A stretch of DNA of 64,000 bases from Macrostomum hystrix (taxonomy: Eukaryota > Animalia > Platyhelminthes). The notes under the pieces were generated by a model. The model had not been told where the DNA came from. It worked only from the letters and a program-made list of their open reading frames with translations, and searched no databases. This document shows positions 30,078 to 43,626 of the stretch, one piece after another (within the stretch, counting starts at the first letter, position 1; each line of letters opens with the position of its first letter). Position numbers and translations under genes: made by a program. The stretch covers positions 744,001-808,000 of the forward strand of contig CATNEN010000009.1 in NCBI GenBank assembly GCA_950097015.1. The letters run 5' to 3'.

Positions 30078-31021
30078 TGCTAAGGGTTCGCTCAAGATTT
30101 GCTCAGGGTTTGCTCAAGATATGCTAAGGGTTCGCACAAGATTTGCTTAGGGTTCGCTCAAGATATACTAAGGGTTCGCACAAGATTTGCTTAGGGTTCG
30201 CACAAGATTTGCTTAGGGTTCGCTCAAGATATGCTAAGGGTTCGCACAAGATTTGCTTAGGGTTCGCTCAAGATTTGCTTAGGGTTCGCTCAAGATATGC
30301 TAAGGGTTCGCACAAGATTTGCTTAGGGTTCGCTCAAGATTTGCTTAGGGTTCGCTCAAGATTTGCTTAGGGTTCGCTCAAGATTTGCTTAGGGTTCGCT
30401 CAAGATTTGCTAAGGGTTCGCTCAAGATTTGCTAAGGGTTCGCTCAAGATATACTAAGGGTTCGCACAAGATTTGCTTAGGGTTCGCTCAAGATTTGCTT
30501 AGGGTTCGCTCAAGATTTGCTTAGGGTTCGCTCAAGATATGCTAAGGGTTCGCACAAGATTTGCTTAGGGTTCGCTCAAGATTTGCTTAGGGTTCGCTCA
30601 AGATTTGCTTAGGGTTCGCTCAAGATTTGCTTAGGGTTCGCTCAAGATTTGCTTAGGGTTCGCTCAAGATTTGCTAAGGGTTCGCTCAAGATTTGCTAAG
30701 GGTTCGCTCAAGATATACTAAGGGTTCGCACAAGATTTGCTTAGGGTTCGCTCAAGATTTGCTTAGGGTTCGCTCAAGATTTGCTTAGGGTTCGCTCAAG
30801 ATATGCTAAGGGTTCGCACAAGATTTGCTTAGGGTTCGCTCAAGATTTGCTTAGGGTTCGCTCAAGATTTGCTTAGGGTTCGCTCAAGATTTGCTTAGGG
30901 TTCGCTCAAGATTTGCTTAGGGTTCGCTCAAGATTTGCTAAGGGTTCGCTCAAGATTTGCTAAGGGTTCGCTCAAGATATACTAAGGGTTCGCACAAGAT
31001 TTGCTTAGGATTCGCTCAAGA
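30078..31021. repeat. 22-bp minisatellite containing TTAGGG (GCTTAGGGTTCGCTCAAGATTT)
   Basis: Direct reading; the variant unit has CTAAGGG; recurring multi-unit blocks. Confidence 0.96.
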
Positions 31022-31251
31022 TTTAATATTACCTTGAATTATAAACTGGCTTTGTATTTATAGTGATTTTCACATAGTGATACTTGCGCACAGACACACG
31101 CATATGCATATACTACATATAGCAAACCAGAATTTATTGTTTAATAATTAAGTTCGATTTAAATAACAAATATAGAATCCTGACACTTCGCGCACTGCAC
31201 TACTGTCCACCCAAACTGAGTAGTGCGGTCAGCTGTGCTACCACCGTACTT

Positions 31252-34200
31252 TTAGCCACTGGTGACGAGCCCCACGATAGCCAGGAAGCCTGCCGCGATG
31301 GCGGAGAAGCCAGAAATGCAGCCTTTCGTAGTGTTGTAGTGACTCAAGCGGACCATGAGCACACCCAAAAGCACCAGTACTCCTGCGGGAGGGCGATGTG
31401 AGATTTGAGACTGTGAGATTTGAGACTGTGAGATTTGAGACTGTGAGATTTGAGACTGTGAGATTTGAGACTGTGAGATTTGAGACTGTGAGATTTAAGA
31501 CTGTGAGATTTGAGACTGTGAGATTTGAGACTGTGAGATTTGAGACTGTGAGATTTGAGACTGTGAGATTTGAGACTGTGAGATTTGAGACTGAGATTTC
31601 AGACTGTGACATTTCAGGCTGTGAGATTTGAGACTGTTAGATTTGAGACTGTGAGATTTGAGACTGTGAGATTTGAGACTGTGAGATTTGAGACTGTGAG
31701 ATTTGAGACTGTGAGATTTGAGACTGTGAGATTTGAGACTGTGAGATTTGAGACTGTGAGATTTGAGACTGTGAGATTTGAGACTGTGAGATTTGAGACT
31801 GTGAGATTTGAGACTGTGAGATTTGAGACTGAGATTTCAGACTGTGACATTTCAGGCTGTGAGATTTGAGACTGTGAGATTTGAGACTGTGAGATTTGAG
31901 ACTGTGAGATTTGAGACTGTGAGATTTGAGACTGTGAGATTTGAGACTGTGAGATTTGAGACTGTGAGATTTGAGACTGTGAGATTTGAGACTGTGAGAT
32001 TTGAGACTGTGAGATTTGAGACTGTGAGATTTGAGACTGTGAGATTTGAGACTGTGAGATTTGAGACTGTGAGATTTGAGACTGTGAGATTTGAGACTGA
32101 GATTTCAGACTGTGACATTTTTCAGGCTGTGAGATTTGAGACTGTGAGATTTTAGACTGTGAGATTTGAGACTATGAGATTTGAGACTGTGAGATTTGAG
32201 ACTATGAGATTTGAGACTGTGAGATTTGAGACTGTGAGATTTGAGACTGTGAGATTTGAGGCTGTGAGATTTCAGACTGTGAGATTTCAGACTGAGATTT
32301 CAGACTGTGAGATTTGAGACTGTGAGATTTGAGACTGTGAGATTTGAGACTGTGAGATTTGAGACTGTGAGATTTGAGACTGTGAGATTTGAGACTGTGA
32401 GATTTGAGACTGTGAGATTTGAGACTGAGATTTCAGACTGTGACATTTTTCAGGCTGTGAGATTTGAGACTGTGAGATTTTAGACTGTGAGATTTGAGAC
32501 TATGAGATTTGAGACTGTGAGATTTGAGACTATGAGATTTGAGACTGTGAGATTTGAGACTGTGAGATTTGAGACTGTGAGATTTGAGACTGTGAGATTT
32601 GAGACTGTGAGATTTGAGACTGTGAGATTTGAGACTGTGAGATTTGAGACTGTGAGATTTGAGACTGTGAGATTTGAGACTGTGAGATTTGAGACTGTGA
32701 GATTTGAGACTGTGAGATTTGAGACTGTGAGATTTCAGACTGTGAGATTTGAGACTGAGATTTGAAACTGTGAGATTTGAGACTGTGAGATTTGAGACTA
32801 TGAGATTTGAGACTGTGAGATTTGAGACTGTGAGATTTGAGACTGTGAGATTTGAGACTGTGAGATTTGAGACTGTGAGATTTGAGACTGTGAGATTTGA
32901 GACTTAGATTTCAGACTGTGACATTTTTCAGGCTGTGAGATTTGAGACTATGAGATTTGAGACTGTGAGATTTGAGACTGTGAGATTTGAGACTGTGAGA
33001 TTTGAGACTGTGAGATTTGAGACTGTGAGATTTGAGGCTGTGAGATTTCAGACTGTGAGATTTCAGACTGAGATTTCAGACTGTGAGATTTGAGACTGTG
33101 AGATTTGAGACTGTCAGATTTGAGACTGTGAGATTTGAGACTGGTAGATTTGAGACTGTGAGATTTGAGGCTGTGAGATTTGAGACTGTGAGATTTGAGA
33201 CTGTGAGATTTGAGACTGTGAGATTTGAGACTGTGAGATTTGAGACTGAGATTTCAGACTGTGACATTTTTCAGGCTGTGAGATTTGAGACTGTGAGATT
33301 TTAGACTGTGAGATTTGAGACTATGAGATTTGAGACTGTGAGATTTAAGACTGTGAGATTTCAGACTGTGAGATTTGAGACTGAGATTTGAAACTGTGAG
33401 ATTTGAGACTGTGAGATTTGAGACTATGAGATTTGAGACTGTGAGATTTGAGACTGTGAGATTTGAGACTGTGAGATTTGAGACTGTGAGATTTGAGACT
33501 GTGAGATTTGAGACTGTGAGATTTGAGACTTAGATTTCAGACTGTGACATTTTTCAGGCTGTGAGATTTGAGACTATGAGATTTGAGACTGTGAGATTTG
33601 AGACTGTGAGATTTGAGACTGTGAGATTTGAGACTGTGAGATTTGAGACTGTGAGATTTGAGGCTGTGAGATTTCAGACTGTGAGATTTCAGACTGAGAT
33701 TTCAGACTGTGAGATTTGAGACTGTGAGATTTGAGACTGTCAGATTTGAGACTGTGAGATTTGAGACTGGTAGATTTGAGACTGTGAGATTTGAGGCTGT
33801 GAGATTTGAGACTGTGAGATTTGAGGCTGTGAGATTTCAGGCTGTGAGATTTGAGACTGTTAGATTTGAGACTGTGAGATTTGAGACTGTGAGATTTGAG
33901 ACTGAGATTTCAGACTGTGACATTTTTCAGGCTGTGAGATTTGAGACTGTGAGATTTCAGGCTGTGAGATTTGAGACTGTGAGATTTGAGACTGTGAGAT
34001 TTCAGGCTGACATTTCAGGCACTGAGATTTTAGATAACTAGCTTGCTATTCTTGATGCTAGTTAATCGAGCTGTGGTTAGACTGTGATTGAGGCAAGCAC
34101 TGTACATGCTGGGCTGAGCTGCACGCTGAGGATTTCATGTCAGTCGTGAGCTCACAACCATCTCATATCTTCCATAGTGTCGAGGGGTTGGAGTGGGGAC

Positions 34201-36791
34201 TGATGAGGCTCGGAGGCTGCGGAAGCTCGGGTTTCAAATCTCGGCGCACCGCATCGACTGCAGATAAATTGGCGATCGCCTCAAAATGACAGCTCAGACC
34301 TGCCCGGACTCACAAACATCATTCCGACCAGCTTGGGACATGTCAGGTGAGTCCTATGAGCAAAAATACAGAGTCTTGTGGATACTCAAATAGACTCACT
34401 GGCATAGCCTCACTGGCATAGCCTCACTGGCATAGCCTCACTGGCATAGCCTCACTGGCATAGCCTCACTGGCATAGCCTCACTGGCATAGCCTCACTGG
34501 CATAGCCTCACTGGCATAGCCTCACTGGCATAGCCTCACTGGCATAGCCTCACTGGCATAGCCTCACTAACATAGCCTCACTGGCATAGCCTCACTGGCA
34601 TAGCCTCACTGGCATAGCCTGATAGAATGATGGCATAGACTCACTGGCATAGCCTCACTGGCATAGCCTGATAGAATGATGGCATAGCCTCACTGGCATA
34701 GCCTGATAGAATGATGGCATAGCCTCACTGGCATAGCCTGATAGAATGATGGCATAGACTCACTGGCATAGCCTGATAGAATGATGGCATAGACTCACTG
34801 GCATAGCCTGATAGAATGATGGCATAGACTCACTGGCATAGCCTGATAGAATGATGGCATAGACTCACTGGCATAGCCTGATAGAATGATGGCATAGACT
34901 CACTGGCATAGCCTGATAGAATGATGGCATAGACTCACTGGCATAGCCTGATAGAATGATGGCATAGACTCACTGGCATAGCCTGATAGAATGATGGCAT
35001 AGACTCACTGGCATAGCCTGATAGAATGATGGCATAGACTCACTGGCATAGCCTGATAGAATGATGGCATAGCCTCACTGGCATAGCCTGATAGAATGAT
35101 GGCATAGACTCACTGGCATAGCCTGATAGAATGATGGCATAGACTCACTGGCATAGCCTGATAGAATGATGGCATAGACTCACTGGCATAGCCTGATAGA
35201 ATGATGGCATATCATAGAATGATAAGCCAGAACAGATGTAATTCAGAGCTAGTATGTAAATAGTCACTTTCACAGCTAGCCTGGCTGACCCAGAGTAACT
35301 CAAAAGTCTGGCAAGTCCATTTGAAAGTTAATTAGCATAAACTGACCGACAGCTGGCAGTGAGGCCAGCTGCACAGAGTCGCAGGGGAGGGGCACACGCG
35401 GAATGACTAATGGAGGAAACTCGGCCCGACCCCGGTGAGAGAATTGGCGGTCCGAGTTCTCTCAAATGTCAGCGGCTTGTCGCTGTGGGCTAAAACGCAA
35501 CTCGCAACGCTTTCGCAAAAAAACAAACAGACGAACTGCCGCAGCAGCAGCAGCAGGCGAGCATGGCGGCATTCTCTGAGAAGCACTCACTGCTCAAGAC
35601 CAGCATCATTCTCAGCTGCATTGGCTTCATCTGCTACCTGCAGTTCCCCGTGCTCAGCTGCCCGGGCTTTTCAAGCCTCCTGGCCAACAGCCTCTGTGAT
35701 GCGGCCTCCGGCATGGCGCACCAGGCATTCGGCATCATCTCCCTGCTGCTGTTCTACTCACTGCTGCTCATCCTCATTCTGTACGTGTTCGTGGAGGAGG
35801 CCAGCAACTACAACATTTTGGCCTTCGCTTGCTTCATCATCGCCTTCCTTACTGGTGAGCGAATGTCACAATGTCACTGTCACAATGTCACTCTGTCACA
35901 ATGTCACTCTGTCACAATGTCACTCTGTCACAATGTCACTCTGTCACAATGTCACTCTGTCACAATGTCACTCTGTCACAATGTCACTCTGTCACAATGT
36001 CACTCTGTCACAATGTCACTCTGTCACAATGTCACTCTGTCACAATGTCACTCTGTCACAATGTCACTCTGTCACAATGTCACTCTGTCACAATGTCACT
36101 CTGTCACAATGTCACTCTGTCACAATGTCACTCTGTCACAATGTCACTCTGTCACAATGTCACAATGTCACACTGTATTACACCTCGCAGCTGCTTTCAT
36201 CCTGTTGGCGGCCTTCGTGGAGCCGACGCTGATCAACCAGTCAGCGACCAGCTGGGCAGGGCTGGGCGCCACCTGCTCATCCCTGACTGGCATTCTGCTG
36301 CTGGTGTACTGCATCCGGGGCACCAGCGGCGCCTGACACAGCTGACACTGGACCCCTTACTAACTGCCCCTGTTACCATATTCATTGTGTAGCAAATTAA
36401 AAGCGAAACGTTCTCATGCGACTGTCGCCAATAAATATACAGTTTAGTCTGTGGCTCAGGCAGCCCTCCCCACAAAGCCTGTTTCCTATTATTGGCTTCA
36501 TATTTTGTACTGTCTGAGCTAACTGCTCACAGTCTTCTCACCTGCTGCCAAGGCGGTGATGAGGTACGCAATTAGCAGTGGCATCAGCTTGGCCTCGTCC
36601 ACGAAGATGTAGACGGACAGCATGACGACTGCGGCCGTGTAGAACAGGTAGGCGAGCACCGACACGGCCTGACCGCCCCTGTCGCCGGTGGCGCCCCAGT
36701 AGAAGTTGCTGTAGAGCAGCAGCAGGAAGCCGATTGCGGTGAAGAAGAATGCCAGTTTTAGCCACTTGCTCAGCGATTCCAGTTCGGCCAT
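31252..36791 (-). CDS. Small four-TM membrane protein, paralogue B; exons 36791-36542 and 31382-31252; 126 aa
   Basis: Exon 1 ends G|GTGAGA (phase 1). Exon 2 follows TCCCGCAG|GA and completes TM3-TM4 (GVLVLLGVLMVRLSHYNTTKGCISGFSAIAAGFLAIVGLVTSG*). Total 381 nt; AATAAA at 31138-31133; same intron position and phase as paralogue A. Confidence 0.8.
31397..34035. repeat. 15-bp minisatellite (GAGACTGTGAGATTT) with higher-order variant blocks
   Basis: Direct reading; ends 14 nt from the paralogue B acceptor. Confidence 0.98.
34393..35212. repeat. Compound array: 14-bp (GGCATAGCCTCACT) turning into 35-bp (GGCATAGCCTGATAGAATGATGGCATAGACTCACT)
   Basis: Direct reading; the 35-mer contains the 14-mer. 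Confidence 0.95.
35563..36336 (+). CDS. Small four-TM membrane protein, paralogue A; exons 35563-35854 and 36191-36336; 145 aa
   Basis: Donor G|GTGAGC at 35855 and acceptor CTCGCAG| at 36190 (phase 1); four hydrophobic segments; AATAAA at 36430-36435; shares IGF, QA..., YVFVEEA/YIFVDEA and a loop NxS/T with paralogue B. Confidence 0.85.
   Translation: MAAFSEKHSLLKTSIILSCIGFICYLQFPVLSCPGFSSLLANSLCDAASGMAHQAFGIISLLLFYSLLLILILYVFVEEASNYNILAFACFIIAFLTGERMSQCHCHNVTLSQCHSVTMSLCHNVTLSQCHSVTMSLCHNVTLSQCHSVTMSLCHNVTLSQCHSVTMSLCHNVTLSQCHSVTMSLCHNVTLSQCHSVTMSQCHTVLHLAAAFILLAAFVEPTLINQSATSWAGLGATCSSLTGILLLVYCIRGTSGA
35863..36175. repeat. 16-bp minisatellite (CACAATGTCACTCTGT) filling the paralogue A intron
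   Basis: Direct reading. Confidence 0.96.
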
Positions 36792-37605
36792 GCTCGGTAG
36801 ATGCTGTTCTGCTGAAGCAATTCGGTCTGAGCTCTGTTTTTTGGTGCGCTTTAACGGCTAAGCAAATGTGAATTTGTGTTGTTCTTTTATTTCGACTGGC
36901 ATTTGGGGGGTCGGGTGGGGGCAGAGGTTTGGGGGGCCAGATGAAAATGCGCAATCAATGCTTTCGGGTTCGCGCAGCGACTCTCCGTTATATTACTGCC
37001 GGGCCGGAAATTTTACTGCTCATAGGTGAGAACCGGGCGCAGCTTAATTTACTTTAAATGCAAGCAAATATGCTTCTGCGCTGTGAATGAAACGATCAAT
37101 TAGACCCGCCTGTCTTTACCGTTTATTAGCTGGGTACTGAACCAATGCAGGACACAAACTGTTCGAATTTAGTCGGGAATCGAGCCCCCCGATAGTTAAG
37201 TCGTCGTTTAAACGCAGGATACAAGCCCTTTTCTGCAATAGATTCCATAAATATTCCAAAACCCATTATTAATTGAACTCGCGGGTTTAGTATATAGGAT
37301 TAGCAGAAGAACCCCATTGTATCGAGAGCTGAGAATCAAGTCTCCCTAATAAGTATATATATATAGATACGGAAAGTGGATATACAAATCGTATTTTCTC
37401 TCGATAAAGTCAAAGTGCATTTGCACACTGTTATTATGCAAATCTGGGTGCCCTTTACTTCGGCCATAGACTACTGAAGCCATGTTTGTCGATGAAATTT
37501 TCAAACAAGTGAGTGCTCTCCTAGCTTTGGTGGAGAATCTGGATTGAATATAGTTTTATTCAAATTGAGCCAAGCCATTCCAATATTCAAAATCAAATTT
37601 GGAAC

Positions 37606-39756
37606 ATGCGGGACAAGCGCACGAGGCCCGAGCAGCAGTCGCAGGCGAATCCTGGAGAGGCAATGCAGGAAATTCGCGGCATGATCGAACAGATCCGGCG
37701 CTGCGAGGCCCTACTGTCTGACGGCAGCAATGAAGGCACTGGCCGACTGTCCGGCCAGTTATTGGCGAAGGCTGACCGCCTCAGCAGGCTCCGCCGCCGC
37801 CGAGTGCGGCCCGAGTCCGCCCCCAGCTCTGACCGCAACAACAACAAATGCTGCTCCGGCAGAGGCCAAGGCACGGCCATACATGAAGTCCAGCCGGAGA
37901 CGCGTGATGCCTCGCTGGAAAGTTGCGACCAGTTTCCGGTTTCCGACCAGTTAATCGGCGAGGCGAGCGTCGAGAGTCTGAACTCGAGCCTCGAGGAGGG
38001 CCCGCTTGACTCCGTTGTAGGCGGCGGTCAAGGACGCGGCAAAAATGATTCGAAGGCCAAGTCGGCTGCAGGCGGCAAAACTGATTCGAAGACCAATCAG
38101 CAGGCTGAAGACGGCGGTCAAGGACGCGACAAAGCAGATTTTAAGCACCAGGAGTACTGCCTCTGCCACAAGCGAAAGTGCAATAATTGCGGCAGCCTCT
38201 GTCCATGCTCTGAGCACGCCTGCCCCGGCTGTGGGAGCTTGAGCCGGGTGGTCATGACTATGCGCTCGGTCAACGGACTCAAGGTGTGTACACGGCTACT
38301 GATAATCTCCCAGAAATTTTGTTTGTGTATTGTCGCATATAGGACTGAGACTGCACAACTGTACACAGCCTTTAGAAGCATTGCACAACAGCCCAGGTGG
38401 GCTAGGTGTATAATAAAAATACTATTAATATTATTTGCAGGAGGGCTGTGGGCGATGACACACCATTTGGTGACAGTAGACCCGCAGCCAGCGAGGAGGC
38501 AATTCTGCCCATTCCGCTGACTCCTGAGCACACACTACTGTGTACATCTGCCCTGACTTTCTCATCGTCAGGCAGTGTACACTTCACTGTGCCTTGGAGG
38601 TTGGCCCTTGAGGTCGTAAATTGCACGACAAGCCCCCAAGCCTTCTCTCCGCGGCTGCGCCCCAAATAAATGTCTCCTCACCACGGAATCGAGCTCAGGT
38701 ATCATTGGTGCGAGCGGCAAAAGTGTTAGACCGGTCGGCCACTCAAACATTAGGCTAGGTTTCATTTCTGCCAAACTATCTCTGGATGGACTTTTACGAG
38801 GAAAAATGAATTAATCAATGCTTTCAATGCCACAGGTCAGGGGTCGGCAAACTTATTTGCGTGCGGGCCACGGAAAGAACCTAAAATACTACAGCGGGCC
38901 GCATTAACTGTTGGAATATGAGAAAGGGGATCGAGATAAGACACAGGAGAGAGAAGACGGGAGAGATGAGACACGGGATAGACGAGACAGGGGAGAGATG
39001 AGACAAAGAAAATATAAGACATAGAAGAGTGAGCCAGGGAGACATGAGACAGGGGAGAGATAAGACACATGACAGATAAGACCGACGAGAGTATGAGACT
39101 CTCCATCTCCTGATGACAGAGACTATATGTGTTGGAAGGGGCAACGGGCCGGATTTGGGAGCTTCGAGAGCCGGAGTTTGCCGACCCCTGCCATAGGGTT
39201 AACCTAGTGCAAGAAATAGCAGGCAATTAATGTTGGAACGAAATTTAATTTTGACTGTCGGTAAATATTTTCCACTCATCAATGCAACCAATTATGCCAC
39301 TGATGTGAATGATTCAGTAGCACTCAGAGCAAATTGCTATTAAAATTCGCACCCTCCCCGCTGCAGACAATCGCCGAAGCGCAGAAGTGTCGCTACCGGA
39401 ATGGCAAAGTGGTCAGAGCCAAGCGCTGCCGGACGCAAGGCAAGCGCTTCCTCATGAACGAGAATCCTATCACCGCTGATTCGTCCGGCGAGTGCGCCCA
39501 CTCCGTCATGGTGCGCGTGGGCGGCGGCTTCGTGCCCCTAGTCGAATACCTGAAGTCGCACAACAAGGTGGTGCTGTCCAAGTTCACCAGATGCGATGGT
39601 AGCGCCTTCCTCAGCCCGTGGCAGCCTCACTACCCAGGGCCATTGCGAAAGGGCCGGCCGAGGGGAATTCGCTACGTGGACTCGGTCACCCAGCAGCTGG
39701 AGGAGCTCATCTTTGCAAACAAGGAGGTCGGCAAGTCAACGTGCGTCTGTACTTGA
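37606..39756 (+). CDS. Probable Cys/His-rich (Zn-finger-like) + divergent GAR (Gas2-related) domain protein; exons 37606-38283 and 39367-39756; 355 aa if joined
   Basis: Exon 2 contains HSVMVRVGGGF...EYLK, matching the GAR VMVRVGGGW motif, after acceptor CCCCGCTGCAG| (phase 0). Exon 1 has CLCHKRKCNNCGSLCPCSEHACPGC and ends AAG|GTGTGT (phase 0). The join is inferred from phase compatibility. Confidence 0.55.
38838..39190. mobile_element. hAT-type MITE (353 bp)
   Basis: 16-bp TIRs CAGGGGTCGGCAAACT / AGTTTGCCGACCCCTG; flanking 8-mers CCACAGGT / CCATAGGG (6/8, decayed TSD); no coding capacity. Confidence 0.85.
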
Positions 39757-41893: not shown

Positions 41894-42137
41894 CTGCCTC
41901 CCCTAGCTGCCACAATGCTCAAAAAAATCTGCTCTGCTCCCCAGAAGCACTCTGATAGCTGTGCTTGACCAGCTGATAATTAATAGAAACTCGCTTAGTT
42001 GTTTTGCAAGTCATATAATATGCAGGAAAGTTTAAAATCGACCTGTACATTTGAATAGGGCAGAGTTTTGATAAATTAAAAACAGAAACGAAATAACTGA
42101 ATTTTTTGCTGCAGCCGCAGCTGCATGCAAGGCAGTC

Positions 42138-43210
42138 AGCGAGGTTGCAGGAAAGACAGTCAGTGTGTTTGCAGGAAAGACAATGGCTGCAGGAAAGACA
42201 ATCAGTGTGTCTGCAGGAAAGACAATCAGTGTGTTTGCAGGAAAGACAATCAGTGTGTCTGCAGGAAAGACAGTCAGTATGTTTGAAGGAAAGACAGTCA
42301 GTGTGTTTGCGGGAAAGACAGTCAGTGTGTTTGCAGGAAAGACAGTCAGTGTGTTTGCAGGAAAGACAGTCAGTGTGTCTGCAGGAAAGACAGTCAGTAT
42401 GTTTGCAGGAAAGACAGTCAGTGTGTTTGCAGGAAAGACAGTCAGTGTGTTTGCAGGAAAGACAGTCAGTGTGTCTGCAGGAAAGACAGTCAGTGTGTTT
42501 GCAGGAAAGACAGTCAGTGTGTCTGCAGAAAAGACAGTCAGTGTGTCTGCAGGAAAGACAGTCAGTGTGTTTGCAGGAAAGACAGTCAGTGTGTCTGCAG
42601 GAAAGACAGTCAGTGTGTTTGCAGGAAAGACAGTCAGTGTGTCTGCAGAAAAGACAGTCAGTGTGTCTGCAGGAAAGACAGTCAGTGTGGCTGCAGTAAA
42701 GACAGTCAGTGTGTTTGCAGTAAAGACAGTCAGTGTGTTTGCAGGAAAGACAGTCAGTGTGTTTGCAGGAAAGACAGTCAGTGTGTTTGCAGGAAAGACA
42801 GTCAGTGTGGCTGCAGGAAAGACAATCAGTGTGGCTGCAGGAAAGACAGTCAGTGTGTCTGCAGGAAAGACAGTCAGTGTGTTTGCAGGAAAGACAATCA
42901 GTGTGTCTGCAGGGAAGACAATCAGTGTGTCTGCAGGAAAGACAGTCAGTGTGTCTGCAGGAAAGACAATCAGTGTGGCTGCAGGAAAGACAATCAGTGT
43001 GTCTGCAGGAAAGACAGTCAGTGTGGCTGCAGGAAAGACAGTCAGTGTGTCTGCAGGGAAGACAATCAGTGTGTCTGCAGGAAAGACAGTCAGTGTGGTT
43101 GCAGGAAAGACAGTCAGTGTGTCTGCAGGGAAGACAGTCAGTGTGGCTGCAGGAAAGACAGTCAGTGTGTCTGCAGGGAAGACAGTCAGTGTGGTTGCAG
43201 GAAAGACAGT
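42138..43210. repeat. 24-bp minisatellite (GCAGGAAAGACAGTCAGTGTGTCT)
   Basis: Direct reading; the 3n unit yields spurious ORFs in several frames. Confidence 0.97.
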
Positions 43211-43626
43211 GTGTCCAACAGGTCTGAGCTGGAGATTGGCTCATTGGAGTGTGTCTAACAGGTGAGTTGGTCTCACGTGTCGAATCGGAGCGGCCGCCCT
43301 GTGACTTCGTTGTATTGTGGCCTTGTCATGAAGCTAATCAAATCAGTCTTTGCCGTTGCCTGGCAGTCAGTGGCTTCGCCTAATTGTCGTCAGCAGAAGG
43401 TCGATTGCGCGGTTACACAATGTCCATCTCGTCGAGCATCGTGCAGGCATCACATTTGCCTGGGTGCTTGTACACTTTTGTTTACTGCCGACCGGCTGCT
43501 GTAGCTGTTGCTGTTGCTTCTTTCGCAGCAGTTGCTGCTGTAGCTGGCCCGCAGCTCGAGGCACCCACGGGCAGCTGGGCAGGTGGGGTAGCATCTCGCG
43601 ATGATCCAAATCGTCTGGGATATTGG

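Follow-up and report, generated by a model that had tools for sequence, protein, structure and literature searches.

Genes that lie inside an intron of another gene and are read from its opposite strand form a well-known class. Caenorhabditis elegans has 567 opposite-strand nested pairs, such as ceh-10 in polq-1, whose members are not rarely co-expressed, though less so than neighbouring genes (PMC12274878), and in Drosophila about 10% of genes are nested, 71% of these on opposite strands, with faster expression divergence (PMC5174743). Both interference and co-expression have been described for such pairs (PMC5174743, PMC12274878). We analysed a pair of this kind in a 64,000-nucleotide (nt) stretch of the flatworm Macrostomum hystrix (GenBank assembly GCA_950097015.1, 220 Mb in 42 contigs; contig CATNEN010000009.1, positions 744,001 to 808,000 of the forward strand; hereafter the window), in which a small two-exon gene, A, lies antisense within the single intron of a second small gene, B. 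As in other animal opposite-strand nested pairs, the guest occupies one host intron, is short, has its own polyadenylation (poly(A)) signal and contains one short intron. The hosts of those pairs are usually long, with many long introns, and unrelated to the guest, whereas B is as small as its guest (2 exons, 126 amino acids (aa)) and paralogous to it, and its intron is long only through satellites; it is the paralogy of host and guest and the small size of the host that are unusual here. Literal phrase matching of the literature turned up no published example of nesting between paralogues, which is weak evidence because only exact wording was matched. We regard it as probable that A and B are a true nested pair of distant paralogues that arose by an old local inverted duplication and stayed under purifying selection, with the host intron inflated by satellites and the layout tolerated.

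Reading of window positions 31000-37000 confirmed a real opposite-strand nested gene pair, with gene A, including its AATAAA, wholly inside the only intron of B (Table 1). The layout had been proposed in an earlier, sequence-only reading, whose coordinates, exons, splice sites and single 5.16-kb host intron all matched the letters, as did its assignment of a separate AATAAA to each gene and its list of motifs (YVFVEEA in A and YIFVDEA in B, IGF, QA, and the sequons NQS and NTT, respectively). Each intron is in phase 1 and interrupts the third hydrophobic helix; for A the phase follows from the 292-nt length of exon 1. B exon 1 encodes the N-terminus, the first transmembrane helix (TM1), a short loop, TM2, the YIFVDEA motif and the first half of TM3, while A exon 1 has a longer first loop with two Cys residues. 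The A poly(A) signal lies ~350 nt from the B start codon. The start contexts of the two genes are alike (GAGC-ATG-GC; inverted repeat I4, window 35553-35567 and 36787-36801), which could be a common Kozak-like context or the last trace of a shared origin.

Table 1. Features of the nested locus, segments of the M. lignano model P0002 that match the window, and family loci in the M. hystrix genome (window coordinates unless a contig is named).
Feature	Position	Strand	Details
Gene A, whole	35563-36336	+	2 exons, 145 aa; 35563-36435 including AATAAA
Gene A, exon 1 (coding)	35563-35854	+	292 nt = 97 codons + 1 nt
Gene A, intron	35855-36190	+	336 nt, phase 1; GT at 35855-56, AG at 36189-90
Gene A, exon 2 (coding)	36191-36336	+	rest of TM3, loop with NQS sequon, TM4, stop codon
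Gene A, AATAAA	36430-36435	+	read directly; ~105 nt before donor of B exon 1
Gene B, whole	36791-36542 and 31382-31252	-	2 exons, 126 aa
Gene B, exon 1 (coding)	36542-36791	-	250 nt = 83 codons + 1 nt, phase 1
Gene B, single intron	31383-36541	-	5,159 nt, phase 1; GT at 36541-40, AG at 31384-83
Gene B, exon 2 (coding)	31252-31382	-	rest of TM3, loop with NTT sequon, TM4, stop codon
Gene B, AATAAA (TTTATT on plus strand)	31133-31138	-	read directly; 114 nt past B stop codon
15-nt satellite	31397-34002		Tandem Repeats Finder; ~175 copies, 2.6 kb, starts 14 nt from B acceptor
14/35-nt satellites	34390-35211		Tandem Repeats Finder; 0.8 kb, upstream of gene A
16-nt satellite	35864-36176		Tandem Repeats Finder; fills almost entire A intron
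Neighbouring gene	37606-39756	+	head-to-head with B, start codons ~815 nt apart
P0002 residues 12-58	31255-31395		plus-strand reading of B exon 2; E 5.5e-4
P0002 residues 131-222	35707-36303		gene A
P0002 residues 233-306	36534-36768		plus-strand reading of B exon 1
P0002 residues 287-611	37597-39750		neighbouring gene
Family loci A, B	C9 (window)	A +, B -	nested pair
Family locus C	C31		close paralogue of B
Family locus D	C7:8158542-8158943 (L013:1489-1890)	+	intronless, uninterrupted 133-aa open reading frame
Family locus E	C1, 9.97 Mb		
Family locus F	C38		
Family locus G	C1, 8.84 Mb		

For gene A, a word-based protein search with exon 1 returned a sole match, the 145-aa M. lignano protein PAA65707.1 (P0001), to which A exon 1 is 76% identical and whose C-terminal part is 84% identical to A exon 2. 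The sequence of P0001 crosses the predicted A junction uninterrupted, and its length equals 97 + 1 + 47 codons; because the Mlig_3_7 annotation from which it comes is a genome-guided assembly of RNA sequencing (RNA-seq) data (PMC5730564), the A-type junction has transcript support in the sister species. An exhaustive phmmer search of 1.84 billion proteins with P0001 gave matches from M. lignano alone, with one further protein, P0002, which is treated below. Since the A intron is in frame, a multiple of three in length and free of stop codons, the listing of open reading frames (ORFs) gives a single 257-aa ORF across the gene. This read-through ORF was rejected as the main product of A, the 145-aa M. 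lignano protein having no repeat stretch; retention of the intron would yield a 257-aa protein in which TM3 is interrupted by a 112-residue Cys/His-rich repeat. Upstream of A, at window 35400-35415 (~150 nt before its ATG), the sequence GAATGACTAATGG is seemingly mirrored in fused M. lignano models, which have 'MTNAG' in place of the 'MTNGG' of the window, and it may be a conserved promoter element.

For gene B, when the entire genome was searched in six frames, each exon had exactly one other match. Both matches lie on contig C31 and make up a paralogue, C, whose exons follow each other as in B on a single strand, ~730 nt apart, with GT..AG at the matching phase-1 position. B and C are 52-53% identical in exon 1 and 50% identical in exon 2 (E 1.7e-4 genome-wide). 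The C-type splice junction is confirmed by a transcript-derived sequence: a 121-aa protein from the Logan assemblies (P0004; longest contig 975 nt), which matches C exon 1 at 91% identity and C exon 2 at 95%, crosses the C junction uninterrupted. The ratio of nonsynonymous to synonymous substitution rates (dN/dS) between B and C is 0.38 for exon 1 and 0.30 for exon 2, at a dS of ~1.0-1.3, and the G+C content at third codon positions (GC3; 0.84 in B exon 1, 0.74-0.84 in B overall, 0.72-0.87 alongside the B-C comparison) resembles that of other members; on these grounds B looks like a maintained coding gene. Every in-phase AG in the B intron was also scanned as a candidate acceptor (41 outside the satellites and 121 within them): none opens a hydrophobic or TM-like C-terminal half, and the acceptor at 31382 surpasses all other candidates in its polypyrimidine tract.

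The relationship of A and B was assessed exon by exon, or at full length with the database proteins P0001 (A-type) and P0004 (B/C-type). The Smith-Waterman score of A against B in exon 1 was 65, compared with 30.7 ± 5.7 for shuffled sequences, and none of 3000 shuffles reached it, including those confined to 10-residue windows that keep the local composition; BLASTP gave E 2e-5 for the same exon. The alignment of exon 2 alone was not significant, and the similarity of A-type and B/C-type in this exon shows up only when P0001 and P0004 are compared by BLASTP at full length (E 9e-9, with 137 residues aligned and the N-x-[ST] sequons in register). Two small profiles, A-type and B/C-type, were matched by hhalign with 94% probability and E 1e-7. 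By sequence comparison A and B are paralogues, as had been proposed, and distant ones (~27% identity).

A hidden Markov model (HMM) built from all pieces (alignment A5) placed the pair in a family with at least seven loci in the genome (Table 1), whose marks are I-G-F in TM1, an acidic F-V-[DE]-[DE] at the end of TM2 and a phase-1 intron in TM3, all of which A and B possess. The sequence-only reading had taken the shared intron as a link between the two genes. The position and phase do agree: counted without gaps, the distance from the EEA motif to the intron is 17 residues in A and 16 in B and C, and a one-residue loop indel brings all three into one alignment column. In A, B, C and E, the first exon ends at a single column in phase 1, and in F and G it ends in the same A-G|GTGAG context. 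Because six of the seven members (A, B, C, E, F and G) share it, however, the phase-1 intron is a family trait and not a mark of parent and daughter. The exception, D, could be a retrocopy or the ancestral form, and its 133-aa length equals that of flatworm protein clusters in the Atlas. Nor did the proposal that A was copied by inverted duplication into the intron of its own parent survive as stated: in exon 1, A is 27% identical to B (23-27%), 22% to C, 27% to D and 29% to E, so that the host is not a nearer relative of A than unlinked members are, while B has its close paralogue in C (52%); D and E are 60% identical to each other.

The nested layout is retained in M. lignano. Two UniProt models that are cluster mates, P0002 (A0A1I8IXU2, 612 aa) and P0003 (A0A1I8FRF1, 634 aa), proved on tblastn against the window to be chimeric predictions along one strand, each a fusion of the neighbouring gene with part of the A-type gene and with B-type exons read in antisense (segments of P0002 in Table 1). 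The start peptide of P0003 is an out-of-register antisense reading of B-type exon 2 and shares a six-residue run with the B antisense frame. Because both models are collinear, M. lignano has B exon 2, A, B exon 1 and the neighbour arranged and oriented as in M. hystrix, in two gene copies, and on this comparison of protein models with the window the nesting predates the split of the two species. The names given to the models, 'CRC domain-containing' and 'MARVEL domain-containing', each cover one piece only.

The family proteins are 120-145 aa long with four helices, and both ends are probably cytoplasmic. The sequence-only reading had recognised no named family, and neither HMM nor fold searches gave anything discriminating. 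Pfam scans of all exons and of P0001, P0004 and D yielded nothing near the thresholds. The proteins resemble MARVEL proteins (MAL, synaptogyrin, physins; PF01284) in their small size, with four TM helices in ~130-150 residues, and one of the fused M. lignano models is automatically named 'MARVEL domain-containing protein' in UniProt; unlike MARVEL proteins, none of A, B, C, D, E, P0001 and P0004 matches PF01284 even at E ≤ 10. With the claudin/PMP22/EMP/TARP superfamily (PF00822) they share the four-TM topology and, in A, two Cys in the first loop, but the Pfam scans gave no PF00822 row, the first loop of B and C is ~10 residues long and has no W-GLW-C-C motif, and the models predict no beta-sheet in this loop. 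Tetraspanins carry a large second extracellular loop with CCG, whereas the TM3-TM4 loop of the family is ~10 residues long without CCG. A sequence profile search of the PDB returned only one chance row (E 7.2). Two AlphaFold models showed four long helices at low to moderate confidence (predicted local distance difference test (pLDDT) 59.6 and 68.6), which is not family-specific; with a low-confidence model, Foldseek ranked claudin-3 top at E 0.15 and synaptogyrin 8a6m second at E 0.43 (template-modelling score (TM) 0.51), and a wide structural search with VIA-align listed designed or generic four-helix bundles first. The fold matches obtained do not tell the families apart. The nearest Atlas clusters, with scores of 0.90-0.91, are 133-aa flatworm proteins automatically named 'putative MARVEL domain-containing protein', which is a lead only. 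A and B resemble MARVEL or claudin proteins in topology only, with no named family confirmed, and the family is apparently a flatworm-restricted and previously undescribed one of small four-helix membrane proteins.

The B intron holds three satellite arrays in addition to gene A. Satellites total ~3.4 kb, or 66% of the intron (3.7 kb of 5.16 kb if the satellite of A itself is included), and the intron without them measures ~1.4 kb; the average M. lignano intron is ~1.4 kb (PMC5730564). The 15-nt array is open in all three minus-strand frames and forms a CACAG acceptor-like site at each unit junction, and the in-phase ORFs of this array are out of frame with B exon 2. Between the B donor and the real acceptor, the three arrays carry 121 in-phase ORFs preceded by AG. 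The introns of paralogues C (L004:~790-1300) and F (L016:~480-2430) are likewise filled with tandem repeats directly after the donor, and satellite-filled introns seem to be a habit of the M. hystrix genome, not peculiar to the nested locus.

The chance that any two of seven loci in 220 Mb lie within 6 kb of each other is 21 x 12 kb / 220 Mb, or ~1e-3, and a local origin is favoured because linkage by chance is this rare. Under the reading that we prefer, an old local inverted duplication would have put one family member into the family-wide phase-1 intron of its neighbour before the two species separated, both copies would then have diverged to ~27% identity under purifying selection, and satellite expansion would later have inflated the host intron from ~1.4 kb to 5.2 kb. 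Each gene would probably have its own promoter and poly(A) signal. The B pre-mRNA would carry antisense A, read-through from A would cross the first exon and promoter of B, beginning ~105 nt past the AATAAA of A, and if both genes were active in one cell, convergent transcription would give some interference. Because published opposite-strand nested pairs are numerous and their co-expression is not rare, we favour an old nesting with some interference over a dedicated switch, and we infer that the layout is tolerated rather than used. Around A and B exon 1, a search for a DNA-level inverted repeat yielded nothing beyond short matches of CTG/CAG codon runs. Several points weigh against this reading. 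The M. lignano layout is seen in mis-merged protein models rather than in genomic DNA; A is equidistant in exon 1 from its host and from the unlinked D and E (27-29%); and the duplication history is drawn from linkage, not from a tree. Furthermore, the M. hystrix gene models were derived from sequence and conservation, the transcription of B and its long splice being deduced solely from conservation, and no B-type protein was found among 5.8 billion clustered proteins in a shared-word search with B exon 1 that produced only three candidates.

One alternative is that the nesting is a switch: either convergent transcription or the pairing of A mRNA with antisense B pre-mRNA would make the paralogues exclusive or coupled in expression, which the sequence-only reading had thought plausible, and the layout would be kept by selection for that reason. 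The layout is indeed conserved between two Macrostomum species though the A proteins are only 76-84% identical, A read-through would traverse the first exon and promoter of B, and in Drosophila expression divergence is raised among opposite nested pairs (PMC5174743). A nested pair would be expected to stay together regardless of a switch, however, because guest and host are difficult to separate without damage to either; hundreds of opposite nested pairs have no such role, co-expression in C. elegans is not rare (PMC12274878), and the large and variable satellites suggest little constraint on the intron. We therefore hold a switch to be unlikely, and slightly less likely still its strict form, a conserved two-state device in which firing of the A promoter would block or truncate B, or the reverse, so that a cell would make one tetraspan protein and not both. 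There is no sign so far of a special regulatory role for the nesting, and coupling of the two genes stays conjectural.

Another alternative is that B is not a working gene, its exons being relics or exon 1 belonging to another transcript, and the host would then be an open-frame artefact. Such a view draws on the failure of the word-based search to find a B-type protein, on the different modelling of the B strand by the M. lignano annotators and on the abundance of acceptor-like sites within the satellites, but it has to contend with two intact frames joined by canonical GT..AG exactly at the family intron position, with a dN/dS against C and a GC3 like those of a maintained member, with the conservation of both exon regions in M. 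lignano and with the lack of any alternative acceptor that opens a TM-like exon; we judge it improbable. That A and B are unrelated and look alike merely as hydrophobic four-helix proteins is very improbable: exon 1 identity is low and the exon 2 alignment is not significant, yet composition-matched shuffles never reach the exon 1 score, the full-length and profile comparisons are both strong, the family HMM recovers A and B together with five other loci, and the intron column and phase are identical. Hardly credible, finally, is a nesting created by misassembly. Two-thirds of the intron is tandem repeat and the array lengths may be wrong, but two independent M. lignano gene models show B exon 2, A, B exon 1 and the neighbour arranged and oriented as in the window. 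We thus retain the reading of an old and tolerated nesting of paralogues.

The A/B locus is a minimal pair of two tiny paralogues with a single host intron, kept in M. lignano, a transgenic model species. The pair would be a compact test case for transcriptional interference caused by opposite-strand nesting, because both products belong to one family and are directly comparable. Current understanding would remain unchanged unless expression coupling of A and B were shown. In addition, the locus defines a small four-helix membrane protein family and flags two chimeric UniProt gene models.

Elsewhere in the window, the gene that lies head-to-head with B encodes a GAS2/GAR domain (PF02187, E 1.5e-5) as well as a CxC stretch rich in Cys, and its M. 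lignano orthologue makes up the C-terminal parts of P0002 and P0003. Beyond it, window 41919-43265 is a 1.3-kb tandem repeat, open in both orientations, whose minus strand carries a 441-aa ORF built of HTDCLSC-like units, and this repeat is probably a satellite rather than a gene.

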